Shown in pieces: positions 5,327 through 18,412 of a DNA stretch of 42,327 nucleotides; the stretch's first letter is position 1; each line of letters opens with the position of its first letter. The position numbers were made by a program, and so were the translations under genes. Origin of the DNA: Octopus sinensis (lineage: Eukaryota). The notes below the pieces were generated by a model, which was not told the DNA's origin, made no database searches, and worked only from the letters and a program-made list of their open reading frames with translations. The DNA is taken from positions 1 through 42,327 of the forward strand of contig NW_021835243.1 of assembly GCF_006345805.1 (NCBI RefSeq), written 5' to 3'.

Positions 5327-8300
5327 GGTACTGTTCTATTTCATGAATCATGAAAATAGGCACTAATTTAATTAATGAAAATTTTTTTGAATATTAGAGG
5401 AAAAATTAAATAAATGTACTATGCCGATTTTGTAAATATTATTATAAATTTTTTTAAAAAATATTTGAATTTTTTAATCGTTTGTGTGGATGGACGGTCA
5501 CGTTGAGATGAGAAAATACGCAAAATTGAAGGACTACGAACTCCCTCGCTCTGAGATGGAGTCCGTAGCCTTCCTTCAGGAGGTTGGAATCATTCCAACC
5601 GAAAAGAAATGTGCCGAAAGACATCCGATGACCCTAAAGCGAGATGGTACAACTTGGGTGTGTGATAAAAGCGAGTGTCGAATTTCAAGTTCTGTCCGAA
5701 ACGGTATAAGAGAGTACTTAATTTTTAGGTACGTGGCTCGAAGGCACGACAGTGTCATTACAATCTTGTATTCGGTTTATTTATATGTGGAGCTTCGACA
5801 GACACAGCATTTTATGGTGTCGGCGTCAACTGGAATGGAGTCGCCAAACGATATGTAATTGGTCTCACTCGCTGCGGGAGGTATGTGCTGCATATTTAGC
5901 AAATCGTCCGAAAAACACTGATTGGTATTATATGTCACAGGCCACAACTGTTACTCCGCCAGATATGTTACACTAAAAATTCATATAAATAGAAATAAAA
6001 CTTTTAAAATTAAAAATTAATACAAAGCATAACCTAATTGTTCGCAAAAATATGCTTTTCTGAATAGAAAAAATTTGGACTGAAACATGAATTTTTTCCC
6101 AAAACCAACATACCGTTAAAAATATGAGTTTTAAATTATTTAGCAATCTATTTAATTTTGGCTTATCCATATCTTTTTTTTATTAAATAATTATTCTTTT
6201 TTTTTAATAAAAAAAATTTTAAAAGCCTCTTATTAGTTTAAAACGTTTTCTATCAAGGAATCACAAAAAAGAAGGATCATTCCCAATTTTAATTAAGCGT
6301 GAAACATGTATTTTCTCATACATGTCACCTGTCTCACTTTGTATTGTTACTACAAAATCGTCTTTTGCCACAATTGTGTATTTCACCATCTCTAATCCAT
6401 CATAAAGTGGATATTGTCGTTTGTTAGCGTCATTATCTTGCCTAAATTACATGTTTATACATCCCAAATACCTTAAGATTACTATCTCTCCTACACTAAA
6501 AGTAGCCTCGTCATACTTCCATTTTCTTCTCTGAGCCATTTTATCAGCTGCCAACAGAATATTTACATACGCTTCATTCCTTTCCTCTTCCAAATATTCT
6601 ATGTCATCATTTTGCAATAACAATGATTCTAGTTCCTCCTCTGATGTTTCAATAGGATATTTTATGCCCATAAATAGATTAAATGGGACTTTTTTTGTGG
6701 TGGAATGGACAGTATTGTTATAATCAAAAACAATGTCTTTGATTATATCGCAATAGCGTCCAAAACATTCATCAGAGTAACTTTTAGATGAAATCCATCT
6801 TTTGATACTCTGATTTAGTCTAAAGAATAATGTTATCTTACAACCTTTCCACCTGTCCCTGTACCCAAGGAGCCCTTGGTCGTCCACGGACATGTTTAAT
6901 TTTGTACTTTTCACATAAACGGGCGACATGGTCATTGCAAAATTCTTTACCATTGTCTGTATGCAAGATCAATGGTGGCCCAATATAATAAAAGATGTTC
7001 TGAAATAACGAAGCAATTTCATGAGCTCTTTTGGTAAAAGATAACTCAACTATCGCGAATTTCGAAAAAGAATCGACAATTACAAGAATCTAATCTTTAT
7101 ATAGCCAAAAGTACCCAGTTATAAGAATCATTAATATCTGAATATCTCCTTAGGTCCACTAAATCGGCGATATACCGATCGCGACTCCGCCTTGCAATGA
7201 TCGGCGTAACTGGGGGTTTAGTAGCCAATGATTTTTTTGACTAAAAAATTAATAAAAAAAACTTAAAACCTGGCAAGGAATACATCGTTTTATGACACGA
7301 TTGATCTCTGCACGTGATATTCCGTGGTATAAGCGCGCCAATTTTGAAAACAACCGGTCTCGACCAAAATGATTCAAATTATGTTCAGCCAATTGAAATA
7401 AACATTTATTATGCAAACTTCAATATATTTATCTTTAAGTTCAGCTTCATCGCTGCAGAAAAATCTTAATTTAAGTCCATCTTTAGTGATATATGGAGCT
7501 CCATCCAAAAAATCAAATTTATTTGCTAATTTCAGTAGTCTTGATCTTTGCATCCGCGAAAGCGTCCTGCTGACGAATACGAGCTCAGGATTGCTCTTAA
7601 GTTCCTTAAGTAATTCTAAGTCTTCCTTTGTTACTTGCACTAAACGCTTTTAACGTGTATTTGTAATTTAAAAAAACATCAATATTTTTTAAAAATTTAT
7701 AAGTTTTCTTTGATTTCATAGAAATATACCAAAGGATTCATGTTTTAAGTTTTTTCCAACTTGACAATTTGATGTTGGTGTAACACATCTGGCGGAGTAA
7801 CAGTTGTGGCCGGTGACATTATTTACATTATTAGATTGCATAGGTGGAATTGGAAATGTCGGTAATTGTAATTACTTTATTTTTGTTAATAGGTTATTCA
7901 ACCCCAGATCTAAATGCTCTTGCTTATGTGCACCTTACAGTCAATCACAAGTTTATTGTAATTCATTTATAAATTTGCAGACGAAATTTTGTAAACCCGA
8001 GGACGGGTGCACATACCCAGTGTGTTGAGAGGTTCGTGTAGCAAAAATTATATACAAAAATATAGAATGTGGGGGAACGCAAAATGGCGCAATAAGAGAC
8101 AAAGAGGAACCGCACGCCACTATATGGGTGAATACTTTGCAGGTATTAAATATTCAGATTTAATTTGTAGAATTTTTATGGAGAAGACAAGTGAGCCATT
8201 TGGACAACGCATTCGACGAATTGTTAGACGCAATTGTGCAATTTTACCAACCGAACGTTTCGCTCCGTAGATCTAACTAACCTTTTTCCTAATAATATCT

Positions 8301-10559: not shown

Positions 10560-10765
10560 CTCTTAGGGCCCACGTATAATGCACCGATGGGCAGATTCAT
10601 GTCAACACAGAGTCTAGATTCAGGAACTACCTCTTTAACAGGCATCAATAACACGTGCCTTGTCTTGGCTTGCATGCTTTCTAAGGTCTTCCGCAACACC
10701 AGTGTCTCGATGTATGCCTTCACCCTGTCCTAAATTGCATGTCAATAGAGAGCTCTTTGCCTTGC
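10560..10765 (-). mobile_element. R4/Dong-like 3' fragment
   Basis: Minus strand DRVKAYIETLVLRKTLESMQAKTRH matches ERVRTYIQTVVLRKTLESMQAEERH of the 2.9-kb copy. Confidence 0.75.
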
Positions 10766-11256
10766 AGCTTCCAGCCCGGTTTCATCACATGAGGTCTACC
10801 CAAACACATTTTTGGACAATCTCCAGCCGCGTTTATCATCAACCCCTCATATGAGGACCAGTAATAATTCCCGCAGTACTGGAAGCAACATGTCTTGTCA
10901 ATGTGAAATGACTGATCCCATATTGTGGTGTAGGTATCTTCCTCAAGGTGAGACAGTGAGATCTTGCTAGGCTGAATACATTGATCTCTATATAGTTCAA
11001 CATATATGGACTTATTGTCACTAAGATAACATGCCGTTGTGTTACAAACACCACCGTCAAAGACAGTGCCTGTTGGCAGGTATGTCATAGGGTCAATGAT
11101 ATAATGGGTGACGGAGACAGATAGGATATCATTAATTGAGATTTTAGACCATTTCTTCTCATCTATCATCGGAAGGAGAATGTTTCTTAACTCAACGGTA
11201 GAAAGGAAAGAGAGAAATATTGCAGAAGCAATTAAAGTGTTAACACTTAATCTCAT
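10720..11256 (-). CDS. Orphan putative secreted Cys-rich protein; C-terminus captured by a retroelement fragment
   Basis: 178-aa open frame, hydrophobic N-terminal signal-like segment, 8 Cys including CCFQYC and DCPKMC. The last about 13 codons overlap the R4/Dong fragment. No family recognised. Confidence 0.5.
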   Translation of the reverse strand: MRLSVNTLIASAIFLSFLSTVELRNILLPMIDEKKWSKISINDILSVSVTHYIIDPMTYLPTGTVFDGGVCNTTACYLSDNKSIYVELYRDQCIQPSKISLSHLEEDTYTTIWDQSFHIDKTCCFQYCGNYYWSSYEGLMINAAGDCPKMCLGRPHVMKPGWKLQGKELSIDMQFRTG

Positions 11257-12420: not shown

Positions 12421-12517
12421 TCCATGTACTTCTTGAACACAAAACTCTGCATAGATGATTAAAGACCTCAAACTCAGTGTCAGTGGACATTATTTAAATG
12501 AACTGTTCGAACATTTA

Positions 12518-14121
12518 CAGTGGGTCAAATTAGTCTTGGGACACTTGTATATTTTTAATAAAATTTTCTTTTCTTAAACATACCTGTTTTTATCTCATTT
12601 TTTCCAAAGGCTAAAAAATTAAGCAAAGTTTTTTACATAATAAAACATTTAAAAATAATCCAAGGAAAATTTTATTTGAAAAAATTTTGACATTTTAAAC
12701 AAACAGTCACAAAATCAAATGCTAATTAGTCTTGGGACAAATTACTTAATACTTTGTAAAGTATCCGTTATTCTCCAAAACTGCATTTAAGCGATTTTTA
12801 TAATTGTTAACAAGCTTTTTACAAGTTTCAACAGGAATTTTATTCCATTCTTCAAAACAAAATGATTTTAATTCCGCAATATTTTTTGGATTATGCGCCC
12901 ATACTTTGGCTTTTAATTCCTTCCAAAGGTTTTCAATCGGATTAAGATCTGGGGACTGACTTGGCCATTCAAGGGTATCAATCAAATGTTCTTCTAGCCA
13001 TTTTTGAGTTTTTTTTGCGCTGTGCTTTGGATCATTGTCTTGTTGAAATGTCCAATTTTCTGCAATACCACATTTCTCAATTGACGAAAATAGATTTTTT
13101 TCCAAAATATCACAGTATTTAGAAGCATTCAATATTCCGTCAATTACATGAAGTTCTCCAACGCCCCAAGAAGAAAAACACCCCCATAGCATAATACTGC
13201 CACCTCCATGTTTAACTGTTGGTATGGTATTTTTTGGACGATATTCATCCTTCGATTTACGCCACACGTAGCTTGTATAATTGTGTCCAAAAATTTCTAT
13301 CTTTGTTTCATCCGACCAAATAATATTATTTAGAAAGTCGTCGTCTTTAAGTAAAATTTTTTTGGCATATTTTAGCCGTGCATGGACGTGTTTCTTAGTA
13401 AGCAGCGGAACTTTACGTGGACGACATTTATGGAACCCTTCTTTTCTTAGGGCATTTGTAACAGTCTGTGAGCATACTGGTGTTCCTATCTCACCCAAGT
13501 AAGTAGAGAGTTGTTTACGAGATAATCTCGGATTATCAAGCACTTTTCGTCTAATTATGGAAATTGATCGAGATGATATTTTTTTGGTTGTCCTGATCTT
13601 GGCTTATTTTTGGTAGTTTTAAATAATTTTCATTTATTGATAATGTTCCATACTGTACTCTTCGGAATATGAACACTTTCGGAAATTTTTCGGATTGAGT
13701 TTCCTGCATTATATTCAAGAAGTATAAGTTTTTTTATTTCTTCTGAATGTTCCTTTCGCTTAAGCATGTACAAAATATTAATCGCAAATAATGCTAATAA
13801 TCATTTAAATATAGGAATTAATCCGGAATTAGTATAATTTCGTTGATCGATATGTAGATCAATTCAATTATTTTATCAAAAAGTAAATAAATAACTAACT
13901 GTCCCAAGACTAATTGGAACATGATATTCTATCTGTTGGAAATAAATGTGAAATTTTTCTATAAATAAAACGAATTTTGTAATTTTTTTATGATCTAGGA
14001 TGTAAAGAAAACTAGGAGCACTATTATACTATTGGAAAAAATTAAATAAAAACAGCTATGTTAACGAAAATAAAATTTTATTAAAAATAAACAAGTGTCC
14101 CAAGACTAATTTGACCCACTG
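12518..14121 (-). mobile_element. Tc1-family DD34E transposon with IR/DR-type long TIRs
   Basis: TA TSDs (12516-17, 14122-23). 30-bp perfect outer TIR CAGTGGGTCAAATTAGTCTTGGGACACTTG. WSDETK / QQDNDPKH / 34 residues / NPIENLW. The N-terminus from ATG 13767 has a stop and frameshifts. Confidence 0.95.
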
Positions 14122-14252
14122 TATTCAAATTTGCAAACTAAGCAACGATTTAAATTATTAATGCTATTCAATAAATTCATCTTTATAACAAAAAAAAATT
14201 ATGTTAAAAAAAATTTATATAATAATAAATTTTGTGATATTACATTAATTTT

Positions 14253-17200
14253 ATGTTAAACACATTTTTTATTTTTAAATTTCAAATCGTTCTAATCATA
14301 ATTCACCAAGTACATCCCCTGACACAAATAAAATGCCCATTGCCAAATTCAGATGAAAGCAGGGAGCATAAAGTCTGCTGGGGCGAGTCCGTAGTTTGTC
14401 TTGCTGTGTTTGATTCGATGAAAAGACCCGTATATTTGCTCTAATCAAACATAGAAACATGAAGAATGCGCTGACAATGTCAATTGTGCCACGTTTTTCA
14501 CAGATAAAATACACGTGATCAACAAATGTGGCAGTTTCAAAACAAGTGAGGAGACCATCATGTGTTGCTGTAGCGAAGACTGTCCTGTGCAATGGCCTCT
14601 CAATACCACCAAAATTATAAATAACACAGAAATCATCAAACGTGAGAACAACTCAATGAAACTTTTTGTAATCATTTTTGCAATTTTAAGTATCTTTACA
14701 ATTATTGGTGTCTATTTAAATCACAAATGGGATGAGCCACGTAGAAACACTCAAGACTATAAGAATATATTACGAAAATCAAGAAAACTGTATTTAATTA
14801 AACCAAAACAATTAACTAATCTGAAAGTATTATGTCGCGACCCACGCTGGCGACCATCCCACGCTGGCGACCATCAGTTTGACAGGTTATGACCTTCAGT
14901 TTGACAGGTGATTAGTTATTTAATTTAAACCGGAAAAAATTCATTTTAAGAAATGGTTTAGCGTCATTTTAGAAAAAAAATTATGGTTTCTCTCAAAATA
15001 TGTTAGCATGAAAAAAGCGACTCAATTTATCATTATTAATGATCGGTATATTTGCGACTCCTAACTCATAGTCTTTATAATCATAATAATATTATGTATA
15101 TTTACGCTACAGTTCCTATTAAATGAAAATGGAATTTTACATGGGAAATTTGGCAATCATGACGTGGCTATTAAAAGATACGCGAACAGCGATTTATTTC
15201 ACAATGAGCTGACAATATTTGGGTATCTTTCCATTTCAAAGGACCACCGGCAACACTGCGTAGGCTGTGTTGGTTTTACAGAATCTCCTCAATTACTATT
15301 GACAGAGTATCACAGCCAAGCATCACTGTCCTGGCACATACATAATGTAGCAACTGGATTTTATTCGTAGAAAAATTCAAATCCTGGAAACCTACTTGGT
15401 TGATAGCATGTGCCGCAACTTTGGTTGATAGCATGTGCCGCAACCTAAAAAAGAACGATTGTGAGACCCGAAAGATTTACGGCCTATAACATGCATGTCG
15501 ACACTTATAAGTTAGTTACCAAGTGTGTTAATGGAAAACTGTCTGAGTTCATGGATGTATTTGGCTTAATTTCCGAAAATCAACTTGGTACGAGGAGACA
15601 GTGTCAGGGTGCTAAAGAACAGGCCCTTATTAACCAATGCCTAAATAAAGAGTATGGAATGGGGCTATACTTGCATGGATTGATGTCAAGAAGGCTTTCG
15701 ATTCTGTTGACCACGACTTTCTATTTCATGTGTTGGAGTGCTCTGGGATACCTTTATGGATTGTTAACTTTGTGAAAAGGACTGTACGAATGTGGACTGT
15801 AAAGCTCCATGTTGACGGAAGGAGAATTGGTTCTGTAAAGTTGAGCCGAGGGATTTTACAAGGAGACTCGTTATCTCCGCAACTGTTGTTATGGTGATGG
15901 ACCCACTAAGCAGGATTCTTAATGCCATGTTTCCAAGGTTCAGATTAATCAACAGGACCAAAATAGTTGACCTATTCTACTAATCATTTGTTCTTCATTG
16001 ACGACCTAAAGATTCGCTCTAAAGAAGATGTAGTAATAAAATGATGGAAGCTGTTGATGGATTCTTTAAATGTTGGCTTGGAGATGAATTCAGAAAAGTC
16101 TGCATCAAATGTTCAAATCTTTATCTTGTTGTGAGACTTTGGAAGGAGTCAAAGGATATCGCTATTGGGTGTACTTGAAGATGCAGGAAGTAATGTTCTT
16201 AAGAGTAAAGTAATGGATTCTATCCTTGGAAATGTAAAGGAAGGATAACCATGCTTTCAAAGACGAAATTAAATGCGGTAAATTTATTCCACGCTATATA
16301 AATGAACATGCCATTTCTCTATATAATTATTACATTGGGCATTAATATTGAACCTCATGAATTTGATTGTATTGACCGTCAAATACGACAACTTCTTACG
16401 ACTCTCAGACTCCATCTCAAACCTGCAAATAAAGAGAGGTTATATTTAAATCGGAAATCTCTTGGGAGAGGACTTGCTTCAGTCTCTTTCAGAAGTGAAC
16501 TGATACTTTTCCAGTTCATGAAAAGTTTAGAAAGACAGTCGACAGTATGCTTACGGAGATCGGGAATCCTGCGTGTGATACAAATAAATAAATGGCATAT
16601 GGCCACAATTGCAGGATTTCTCGCCTCCAAGTATGCAATCTCGACATGGAGAATTTGGGTGTTGAATTTATCAAAGATGCTCAAAGAAATATTTGCTTAA
16701 GAACATCAATTGTAAAATGCTACATTCGGTTCTATTCAAAGCATGGACGAACAAAATGTTGATCTACACATCCTCAGAGTGGTTATCTAAAGGAAATAAT
16801 GGTCCACGGAGTGAAGCATTGTATACTGTCTCTTGCAGGATAGGAATTTGTTTTCACATCCATGGGATCTTTATGCAGTCACTGCAAAAAATGCAAGAAA
16901 ACAGTTGATCATTTGGCTACGCAGTGTGGGAAGATGTTAAACAGTGATTATCTGCGGAGACACAATGAAGTTGTGAAGTGCATTCACCTTCATTTGTGTC
17001 GAACCTACGGTATTAAGAGAGGAAGCAAATTAAAGACTCATTCTGTTCAGTCCATATTATCGACGCAGAATGTTGAAATCAGAGTCGATATGTCAATCAT
17101 GACGGAAACTAAAGTTCAATCCAACAAACCAGATATCTTCGTGTATGACAAAACCAAACAAGAGATAACCTTAATGAAGTTGGCATCACGTCACAAGATC

Positions 17201-18412
17201 GCCTCAAACAAGTCGAAATCGAGAAATTTCGTAAATATGATCTGCTCGCAAACGAACTTTCGATACTTTATGGCAAAGGTAAAGATTATCCCGGTTGTCT
17301 TGACCTGGGACGGTGTGGTTCGAGATATTTCAAAAACTATATGGACAAATTATCGATCGAAAAAGCCCAAGAACTTATATTCAATTGTCGTTTTAAAAAG
17401 GACTCTAGAAAGCATGGTAGTTGAACACAGACATGGAGTGAGAGTATCTACCGAAGAATACGCCTCTGCTGTTACCAGCTTGCAGAAGTGGCATGCTGCC
17501 GTGACACGCCGGTGATGAAGATGTGAGACAAATAGAAAATCTATCTGACTGGGAGATGGAGAGTGAGAAGGAACTGGTTGCAAGGTCTTCTCCTAAAGGA
17601 GAAAGATTCCAATAAGCGGACTGAGAATCTAAATTAAATAGTCTAGCTTAAGTTAAATTGTTTCGATAACAAAAATTATGTATATTTACGCTACAGTCCT
17701 ATTAAATGAAAATGGAATTTTACATGGGAAATTTGGCAATCATGACGTGGCTATTAAAAGATACGCGAACAGCGATTTATTTCACAATGAGCTGACAATA
17801 TTTGGGTATCTTCCATTTCAAAGGACCACCGGCAACACTGCGTAGGCTGTGTTGGTTTTACAGAATCTCCTCAATTACTATTGACAGAGTATCACAGCCA
17901 AGCATCACTGTCCTGGCACATACATAATGTAGCAAACTGGATTTTATTCGTAGAAAAATTCAAATCCTGGAAACCTACTTTGGTTGATAGCATGTGCCGC
18001 AACTTCTGTGGCTTATATTCATTCGCGTTCGATAGTTCACAGAGACATAAAACCTGACAACTTTCTGGTATCAGATGACTGCAAGAATGTCGTTCTCTGT
18101 GACTTTGAATTTGCCCATTGCTTCAAACTACCTCAGGAGAGTCGTCTTTGTCATTCAAAAGTGGGATCCCCTGCATACATGGCGCCCGAGTTGTGGGAAG
18201 GGAATATAAACTATCGACTGGATAGCTACATACTCGTCGATATCTACGCTTTTGGGTGTATGATCAAGGAGGCGTTGGAGGCAAATACCAGTTGGAATTA
18301 CAGACAGATTATTGAACAGTGCCGGGATGATTGTCTCATTCATGATGTTCATTTCAGGCTCTCCTCTGCTGATATCATTGCTAAAATATTTATTGGTTTA
18401 TGTGGAGAATAA
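14253..18412 (+). CDS. TGF-beta/activin type II-like receptor Ser/Thr kinase (TKL), micro-intron-containing, split by insertions
   Basis: After removing the 25-nt intron 14430-14454: signal peptide, 10-Cys ectodomain ending CCCSEDC, TM (LFVIIFAILSIFTIIGVYL), no GS box. Kinase motifs VAIK, HRDIKPDN, and KVGSPAYMAPELWEGNINYRLDSYILVDIYAFG resembling the ACVR2 segment [32 protein letters not shown]. Confidence 0.78.
14836..15089. mobile_element. 254-bp unclassified insertion within a receptor intron
   Basis: 8-bp direct repeat TATTATGT at 14828-14835 and 15090-15097. Internal short duplications (CCCACGCTGGCGACCATC x2, TCAGTTTGACAGGT x2). No TIR seen. Confidence 0.55.
15091..18005. repeat. 331-bp direct repeat (15091-15421 and 17675-18005) flanking the retroelement
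   Basis: By manual alignment the copies differ only by four single-base indels in homopolymer runs. Confidence 0.95.
15446..17674 (+). mobile_element. 5'-truncated R4/Dong-like RLE non-LTR retrotransposon
   Basis: ENQLG..GAKEQALIN, AWIDVKKAFDSV, RGILQGDSLSP and FFIDDLK (RT); C..C....DH...C and RRHNEVV (CCHC); NKPDIFVYDK (RLE); short A tail at 17671-17675. Confidence 0.9.

Follow-up and report, generated by a model that had tools for sequence, protein, structure and literature searches.

A probable young retrotransposon insertion allele of a receptor kinase gene from a tiny-intron genome deposited as Octopus sinensis

Introduction

The window analyzed here, a stretch of 42,327 nucleotides (nt) that represents the entire contig VCDQ01007817.1 of the Octopus sinensis assembly GCA_006345805.1, contains between positions 14253 and 18412 of the forward strand a gene for a receptor-like protein kinase in which one splice donor (GT at 14827-28) faces two copies of the same acceptor, the string ATTATGTATATTTACGCTACAG being present twice with its AG ends at 15111-12 and 17695-96. 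A preliminary description of this DNA, which had placed the donor and both acceptors correctly, took the arrangement for a possible switch created by a transposable element (TE), with the distal acceptor yielding a full receptor and the proximal one a kinase-truncated decoy. Does the locus encode two isoforms, or is it a gene that was interrupted by recent insertions? Our analysis favors the second answer: the locus is probably a young, polymorphic TE-insertion allele of a four-exon receptor gene, which belongs to a tiny-intron organism that is likely a dicyemid. A 254-bp insert and a long interspersed nuclear element (LINE) lie within this allele, and the one-base differences between the two copies of the repeated segment (block X) that flank the LINE are likely errors.

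Results

A protein search with the conceptual product of the receptor gene returned P0001, annotated as 'activin receptor type-2A-like [Octopus sinensis]', as the sole close relative, and with it the locus of this protein on contig VCDQ01012173.1 of GCA_006345805.1 (L001). L001 is collinear with the window, the flanks being 98-99% identical, and contains the same gene as an empty site: the 254-bp insert, the LINE and the duplication of block X are all missing. Across the insertion site it reads without interruption (CTGAAAGTATTATTATGTATATTTACGCTACAGTTCC; L001 10262-10300 reads ...CTGAAAGTATTATTATGTATATTTACGCTACAGTTCCTATT...). Over 12.4 kb of alignment the two contigs differ by 92 substitutions and 44 one-nt insertions or deletions (indels), 38 of which fall in homopolymers, and the substitution divergence is only ~0.7%. 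As both contigs belong to one assembly, the window and L001 are alleles or haplotigs of one organism and not of two species; for the same reason, the view that the window is octopus DNA and L001 that of a sister species was dropped. The uninterrupted allele in the same assembly means, therefore, that the insertion is polymorphic or heterozygous.

The LINE, a 5'-truncated non-long terminal repeat retrotransposon of ~2.23 kb that is absent from L001, occupies 15445-17674 (+) and lies in the same orientation as the gene. It gives an RVT_1 match (4e-10), and its truncation is seen relative to a longer, 96.8% identical copy in L005/L006, which has open reading frames (ORFs) of 537 aa (reverse transcriptase) and 245 aa. 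On either side of the LINE stands one copy of block X, ~330 bp that begin 22 nt before the end of intron 2, span exon 3 and intron 3 completely and extend ~50 nt into exon 4: copy 1 upstream at 15091-15420 (+) and copy 2, continuous with the rest of the gene, downstream at 17675-18005 (+). The copies differ by no substitutions and four 1-nt indels, a similarity far beyond chance. The acceptor has indeed been duplicated, as had been described, but within a block that also carries a whole exon and the whole 25-nt intron 3. The short A-rich tail of the LINE adjoins the left end of X copy 2; where its 5' end meets the right end of X copy 1, there are 1-2 nt of microhomology and a perfect tandem repeat of 25 nt, i.e., a twofold duplication of the end of X at 15396-15444 (+; Tandem Repeats Finder (TRF), 100% match). 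The same-strand LINE with its A-rich tail and 5' truncation, the direct repeat and the microhomology together argue that block X is an unusually long target-site duplication (TSD) of the LINE, as target-primed reverse transcription (TPRT) would leave it.

The second insertion, insert 1, is 254 bp long (14836-15089, +), lies within intron 2, has an A/T-rich 3' end (..ATAATCATAATAA) and is absent from L001. It is flanked by an 8-bp duplication, TATTATGT, at 14828-35 and 15090-97, and contains internal 17-nt and 22-nt tandem repeats (TRF). No second copy was found in the window or in the loci L001-L006, no Rfam family was matched and no terminal inverted repeats were seen by eye; insert 1 is probably an element like a short interspersed nuclear element (SINE) or a 5'-truncated retroposon. 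Its end lies at most 1 nt from the insertion position of the LINE, and this shared site suggests that an endonuclease may prefer the sequence. A third TE, of the Tc1/mariner type (12518-14121, -), ends 131 bp upstream of the receptor ATG and is likewise missing from L001, the comparison with which reveals a TA duplication at the insertion site. It has 92-nt terminal inverted repeats (12516-12607 and 14032-14123) and matches to HTH_Tnp_Tc3_2 and DDE_3, and its transposase ORF is partly frameshifted. A search with the transposase gave one 86% O. sinensis match and otherwise fish, and is uninformative on the host genome.

The receptor gene lies on the forward strand. Exon 1 (14253-14429), in the frame 3 ORF, encodes the start codon, the signal peptide and the first part of a Cys-rich ectodomain. 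With frame 3 ending at 14444 and frame 1 open from 14455, a single indel cannot join exons 1 and 2, and the removal of a GT..AG segment is needed; removal of the 25-nt intron 1 (14430-14454, GTATATTTGCTCTAATCAAACATAG), which is kept in L001 with one substitution, restores the ORF. Exon 2 (14455-14826) translates into the rest of the ectodomain with a CCCSEDC box, the transmembrane (TM) helix and a juxtamembrane segment. Of intron 2, the first 9 nt (14827-14835) precede insert 1, 14828-14835 being the left copy of its TSD. The ancestral 24-nt intron of the preliminary description is confirmed by L001 as a short segment, although it measures 27 nt there and 24 nt in the window by reconstruction. 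Because this segment is in frame and free of stops, its removal cannot be proven from the frame. It has GT..AG boundaries, a fitting size and a 3-nt length difference between the alleles, and only the spliced form holds a constant offset to ActRIIA from IKPKQL to VAIK, where we take the position of the ActRIIA motif LKPLQL as the reference. HMMER alignments with intron 2 in and out showed no decisive difference, and the support for intron 2 is weaker than that for introns 1 and 3.

Exon 3, which encodes the kinase N-lobe, is present twice. Copy 1 (15113-15346, 234 nt), following the AG at 15111-12, is intact as assembled, whereas copy 2 (17697-17928, 232 nt as assembled), following the AG at 17695-96, carries 1-nt deletions at 17697 and 17811; once its two missing T's are restored, the copies are identical. 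Intron 3 measures 24 nt as assembled in copy 1 (15347-15370), one A below the 25-nt form, and 25 nt in copy 2 (17929-17953, GTAGCAAACTGGATTTTATTCGTAG), where its removal brings NLLWLIACAATSVAYIHSRSIVHRDIKPDN in frame with exon 3. Exon 4 (17954-18412) encodes the catalytic loop (HRDIKPDN), DFE, APE and the C-lobe, and ends with the stop TAA at 18410-12. Polarization with L001 indicates that TTT at 'CCTACTTTGG' and AAA at 'GTAGCAAAC' are both ancestral; with both present and intron 3 kept, HRDIKPDN would be out of frame, which supports intron 3. With intron 3 removed, SLSWHIHNKNSNPGNLLWLIACAATSVAYIHS aligns collinearly with ActRIIA and MKK5, and the three-intron model joining exon 3 of copy 1 to exon 4 of copy 2 gives an intact ORF of 413 aa as assembled. 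A two-intron model with a 'repaired' exon (TT from copy 1, AAA from copy 2) was abandoned because L001 has the ancestral TTT and AAA and because a 25-nt GT..AG intron 3 explains the frame without repair. The RefSeq model P0001 (L001 10001-11011) begins at a Met inside the protein and reads introns 2 and 3 as coding sequence; its frame remains open only because the A run at L001 10648 is one base shorter, which offsets the +1 shift from the retained intron 3. P0001 carries 26 out-of-frame residues in place of ...IHSRSIVHRDIK and is a mis-model.

In the conceptual 413-aa protein, a signal peptide is followed by a 10-Cys ectodomain, a single TM helix and a Ser/Thr kinase (Pfam Pkinase, E 1.2e-21). 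The best matches in the Protein Data Bank are ActRIIB and ActRIIA (E ~1e-13), barely ahead of other kinases, and the family-typical stretch YMAPE(V/L)(L/W)EG.IN....D....D.YA.G is present. The kinase keeps VAIK, HRDIKPDN, the D of DFE and APE, with DFE instead of DFG and a degenerate glycine loop. By inspection, the ectodomain has 10 Cys and the CCCSEDC box, and the TM helix LFVIIFAILSIFTIIGVYL is followed by ~40 aa without an SGSGSG motif, i.e., without a GS region; the ectodomain gave no Pfam Activin_recp match at E<=1. The gene resembles ActRIIA/ActRIIB in its signal peptide, small 10-Cys ectodomain with a CC..C box, single TM helix, lack of a GS region and Ser/Thr kinase, but it is very divergent and lacks the ActRII-specific insert before HRD. 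In an exhaustive HMMER scan of 1.84 billion representatives the protein found only itself below 1e-13, and no transcript-derived relative was present in collections of 5.8 and 1.8 billion proteins. Judged from its predicted product, this small four-exon gene most likely encodes a divergent type II activin/TGF-beta-receptor-like protein.

The GT..AG segments of the receptor gene, whose removal restores the ORF, measure 25, 24 and 25 nt, with intron 2 reaching 27 nt in L001. Introns of similar size were found in an HSDL2-like short-chain dehydrogenase gene (L003 6718-7627, +), where 26-nt GT..AG introns lie at 7128-7153 and 7387-7412 and the alignment of the spliced homologue with human HSDL2, a conserved dehydrogenase (3kvo_A, E 3.5e-46), is collinear and free of gaps at both junctions. 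The possibility that the receptor gene is an octopus gene with its 'intron' as coding sequence, as in the RefSeq reading of P0001, was rejected on the strength of these 26-nt introns on another contig. Dicyemids are reportedly the subject of work by Ogino in 2010 on ultra-short spliceosomal introns. The only animals with reported introns of less than 30 nt are dicyemids and myxobolid myxozoans (Hadjez 2026, PMC13644364). The renal sac of O. sinensis is home to Dicyema japonicum, whose genome of 67.5 Mb has a GC content of 36.7%, consists of repeats to 49% and contains LINE ORF2 in many copies (Lu 2019, PMC6736024); in a second Dicyema genome the median intron is 27 bp, and two thirds of dicyemid introns are under 30 nt (Zverkov 2019, PMC6543705). 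The GC content of the window is 37.1%. The contigs thus share with dicyemids the 24-27-nt GT..AG segments and an AT-rich, repeat-rich metazoan genome found with O. sinensis; they differ in having been deposited and annotated as Octopus sinensis. By elimination, on the basis of intron size, metazoan gene content, host, GC and repeat content, the contigs most likely consist of DNA from a dicyemid-like parasite that was co-assembled with the octopus. With such an origin, and with three receptor introns of 24-25 nt and two 26-nt introns in the HSDL2 homologue, the earlier premise that introns in this genome are about 25 nt is correct.

Each of the four differences between the copies of block X is a 1-nt deletion: one copy lacks a base that both the other and L001 have, at 17697 and 17811 for copy 2 and at 15352 and 15395 for copy 1. 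A similar pattern was observed in the LINE, where the window copy (15445-17664) differs from L005 4570-6815 by 26 small deletions and 5 insertions over 2.2 kb. The deletion rate is ~1.2% in the X copies and the LINE alike, and the LINE is too young for decay. Deletions of this kind are typical of long-read consensus errors that short-read polishing has not fixed in repeats. Given the same deletion rate in the LINE, the deletion bias and the location in homopolymers, the four X indels are most likely consensus (deletion) errors of the long-read assembly in repeats, and the frameshifts of copy 2 at 17697 and 17811 are probably not real. The deletion-biased errors in the repeats of the window also call for caution with frameshifts in its other TE ORFs.

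Several transcripts can be predicted from the insertion allele. If the enlarged intron 2 is retained, a stop is predicted at 14890, giving 204 aa that end in a short tail after the ectodomain and the TM helix. The same TGA at 14890 would be reached through a cryptic 51-nt GT..AG segment (14827-14877) that keeps the frame and ends at the first AG inside insert 1. The proximal acceptor had been expected to carry the reading frame into the retroelement. As assembled, the frame instead ends at TAG 15368-70, or at TGA 15401-03 if intron 3 is spliced; splicing of the 286-nt intron 2 and the local intron 3 predicts 271 aa, and ~300 aa ending ~40 nt into the LINE if the T missing from copy 1 relative to copy 2 and L001 is restored. 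Splicing from 14827 to 17696 would remove 2,870 nt, in agreement with the ~2.87 kb given earlier. As assembled, this route meets a stop after two codons (SY*), and the receptor would be restored in full length, as had been proposed, only if both deletions of copy 2 are errors. The preliminary gene model had missed intron 3; its recognition changes the proximal product and reveals a further route, from the donor at 15347 to the acceptor at 17953 (2,607 nt), for which the full 413 aa are predicted without sequence correction. The full-length routes need a splice over 2.6-2.9 kb, ~100 times the usual intron length in the organism. Since two thirds of dicyemid introns are under 30 nt, short-range splicing, and hence truncation, would be the likeliest outcome.

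The annotated relatives of the LINE family among cephalopods and molluscs are 'Octopus sinensis' entries only, on contigs of 26-509 kb, with none in other cephalopods or molluscs, and one relative is labelled R2-like by its source. The 245-aa ORF contains, by eye, C-x2-C-x8-H-x4-C and KPDIF...IEV...K (a CCHC/PD..E-type region); this region matches no Pfam model, its layout being judged by motif inspection only, and no copy yielded the N-terminus of the full-length element. Outside 'O. sinensis', the closest named relatives of the LINE protein come from assemblies of microsporidia (Hamiltosporidium, Vairimorpha, Dictyocoela, Nucleospora) and Babesia, which could be due to horizontal spread among parasites or to contamination of those assemblies. 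L005 and L006 lie 32 kb apart on VCDQ01013470.1 (135379-148074 and 167474-180169) and hold the same 12.7-kb segment including the LINE, with only 8 mismatches over the 3 kb counted; the repeat stems either from a recent segmental duplication or from the assembly. Genes with introns of 24-27 nt, proteins that are orphans or very divergent, and a LINE family that is unannotated in any other cephalopod characterize the window, L001 and L003-L006.

Discussion

The arrangement of the locus is best accommodated by two target-primed retrotranspositions that would have struck the 24-nt intron 2 at positions no more than 1 nt apart. The first would have delivered the 254-bp element with its 8-bp TSD; we infer that it preceded the LINE. 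In the second event, the 5'-truncated LINE would have used a first nick in intron 2 and a second-strand nick ~330 bp downstream in exon 4, and the subsequent fill-in would have duplicated the stretch from the end of intron 2 through exon 3 and intron 3 into the start of exon 4. As far as the predicted transcripts allow, the insertion haplotype has probably lost the function of the gene. Insertions of human L1 into disease genes offer a parallel in their 5' truncation, sense-oriented A-rich tail at the first nick, target duplication, 5' microhomology and allelic presence or absence. They differ in that the TSD found here measures ~330 bp and contains a complete exon with both splice sites, that the target is a 24-nt intron, and that L1 has an N-terminal APE nuclease, whereas this LINE has a C-terminal CCHC/PD..E-type region in an R2/NeSL/HERO-like layout (by motif inspection only).

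Several observations weigh against this interpretation. A TSD of 330 bp lies far above the ~5-30 bp that are usual for LINEs; TSDs above 100 bp do occur, and a literature search for documented very long LINE TSDs gave no usable figure. No second long TSD of this LINE family was found in L005, the copy checked, which is nested in other TEs. Two insertions within 1 nt are an unexplained coincidence unless the endonuclease prefers the site. The dicyemid assignment was made by elimination, and the indels and splices are read from the assembled sequence. Finally, L001 as assembled has three 1-nt exon deletions under the spliced model, and the gene could be decaying on both haplotypes. These three indels are homopolymer deletions, however, and occur at the background rate of both contigs.

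The last point leads to the rival that we consider unlikely rather than far-fetched, namely a pseudogene decaying on both haplotypes, in which the indels are real and TE insertions pile up in dead sequence. It would account for the three exon deletions of L001, for exon indels that are not depleted relative to the flanks (3 per 1.0 kb against 3.6 expected), for 4 non-synonymous beside 4 synonymous differences, for an orphan protein with a degenerate glycine loop and DFE for DFG, and for three TE insertions in or near the gene on one haplotype. Yet the assembly leaves every window exon intact outside the repeated block, the catalytic residues (VAIK, HRDIKPDN, the D of DFE, APE) are kept, dN/dS is ~0.3, albeit from tiny counts, and the indels are deletion-biased and located in homopolymers, as are long-read errors. 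It is quite improbable that X-LINE-X is an assembly artefact, in which a LINE common to several haplotypes or individuals (a parasite pool in one host) led to the chimeric joining of their reads. The contig is short (42 kb) and comes from a co-assembled minority genome, indel errors in repeats are frequent, and the haplotigs differ by seven insertion/deletion blocks over ~20 kb, all of which such a join would fit. It would, however, require that two haplotypes had independently received a LINE of the same subfamily in this gene, at positions 330 bp apart, while both junctions resemble genuine TPRT (the tail abuts the site, and the 5' end shows microhomology and the 25-nt repeat) and the sequence flanking the LINE is otherwise continuous with the gene.

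A functional two-isoform locus, where distal splicing provides the full receptor and proximal splicing a stable kinase-truncated dominant negative, was the core of the preliminary description and now appears very improbable. In vertebrate experiments, deletion of the kinase turns type II receptors into dominant negatives, the proximal routes predict proteins with ectodomain and TM helix but no catalytic loop, and the splice from 15347 to 17953 leaves an intact ORF as assembled. Against this stand the uninterrupted allele in the same assembly, a TSD without substitutions, which makes the insertion too young for shaping by selection, introns 11 to 110 times the modal length of such genomes, stops of the truncated transcripts that would fall far upstream of further junctions, and collections of 5.8 and 1.8 billion proteins with no transcript-derived protein. 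The insertions are TE-derived, as had been claimed, and recent, whereas an evolved or regulated switch finds no support in a young allele with an intact counterpart. The comparison with BAMBI is also a poor one: the predicted truncated products hold, like BAMBI or kinase-deleted type II receptors, an ectodomain and a TM helix without catalytic activity, but the BAMBI gene is conserved and dedicated to a protein that has a type I-like ectodomain and lacks a kinase, while truncation here would be a by-product of a young insertion, which is absent from L001 and thus not conserved, and the predicted product keeps part or all of the N-lobe plus junk residues. That transcripts of the insertion allele are spliced over 2.6-2.9 kb as well as locally, giving the full receptor and a membrane-anchored kinase-dead competitor, is hardly to be expected at all; if it were true, a single young LINE insertion with an exon-bearing 330-bp TSD would have made both products at one stroke.

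As a gene-disrupting retrotransposon polymorphism, the locus represents a known kind of event; its unusual features are the very long, exon-carrying TSD and a 24-nt intron that was hit twice. A LINE TSD of ~330 bp with a full exon and both splice sites would be a clean, dated example of tandem exon duplication by retrotransposition, and the allele offers a natural test of how a spliceosome tuned to ~26-nt introns deals with an intron of 286 nt or 2.9 kb. In practical terms, the mislabelled parasite contigs probably matter more than the locus. Contigs of O. sinensis and RefSeq 'octopus' proteins appear to be parasite-derived, and the parasite gene models are wrong because the annotation pipeline reads through tiny introns, which has consequences for comparative studies of genes and TE families in cephalopods.

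Additional observations

The comparison of window 8900-29400 with L001 7800-20100 revealed seven insertion/deletion blocks over the ~20 kb shared. Six are present in the window and absent from L001 (9944-11791, 12518-14121, 14836-15089, 15421-17674, 25060-26545 and 27347-28003), and one is restricted to L001 (L001 13075-13419). The window blocks reflect either very recent TE activity or one haplotype that has gathered insertions. Inside the first block, 1.85 kb long, lies an ORF of 178 aa (10720-11256, -) that gave no Pfam match and has a signal-peptide-like start and many Cys. Beside the HSDL2 homologue, L003 3923-5095 encodes a very divergent, intronless Kv channel of 390 aa with BTB_2 and Ion_trans domains.

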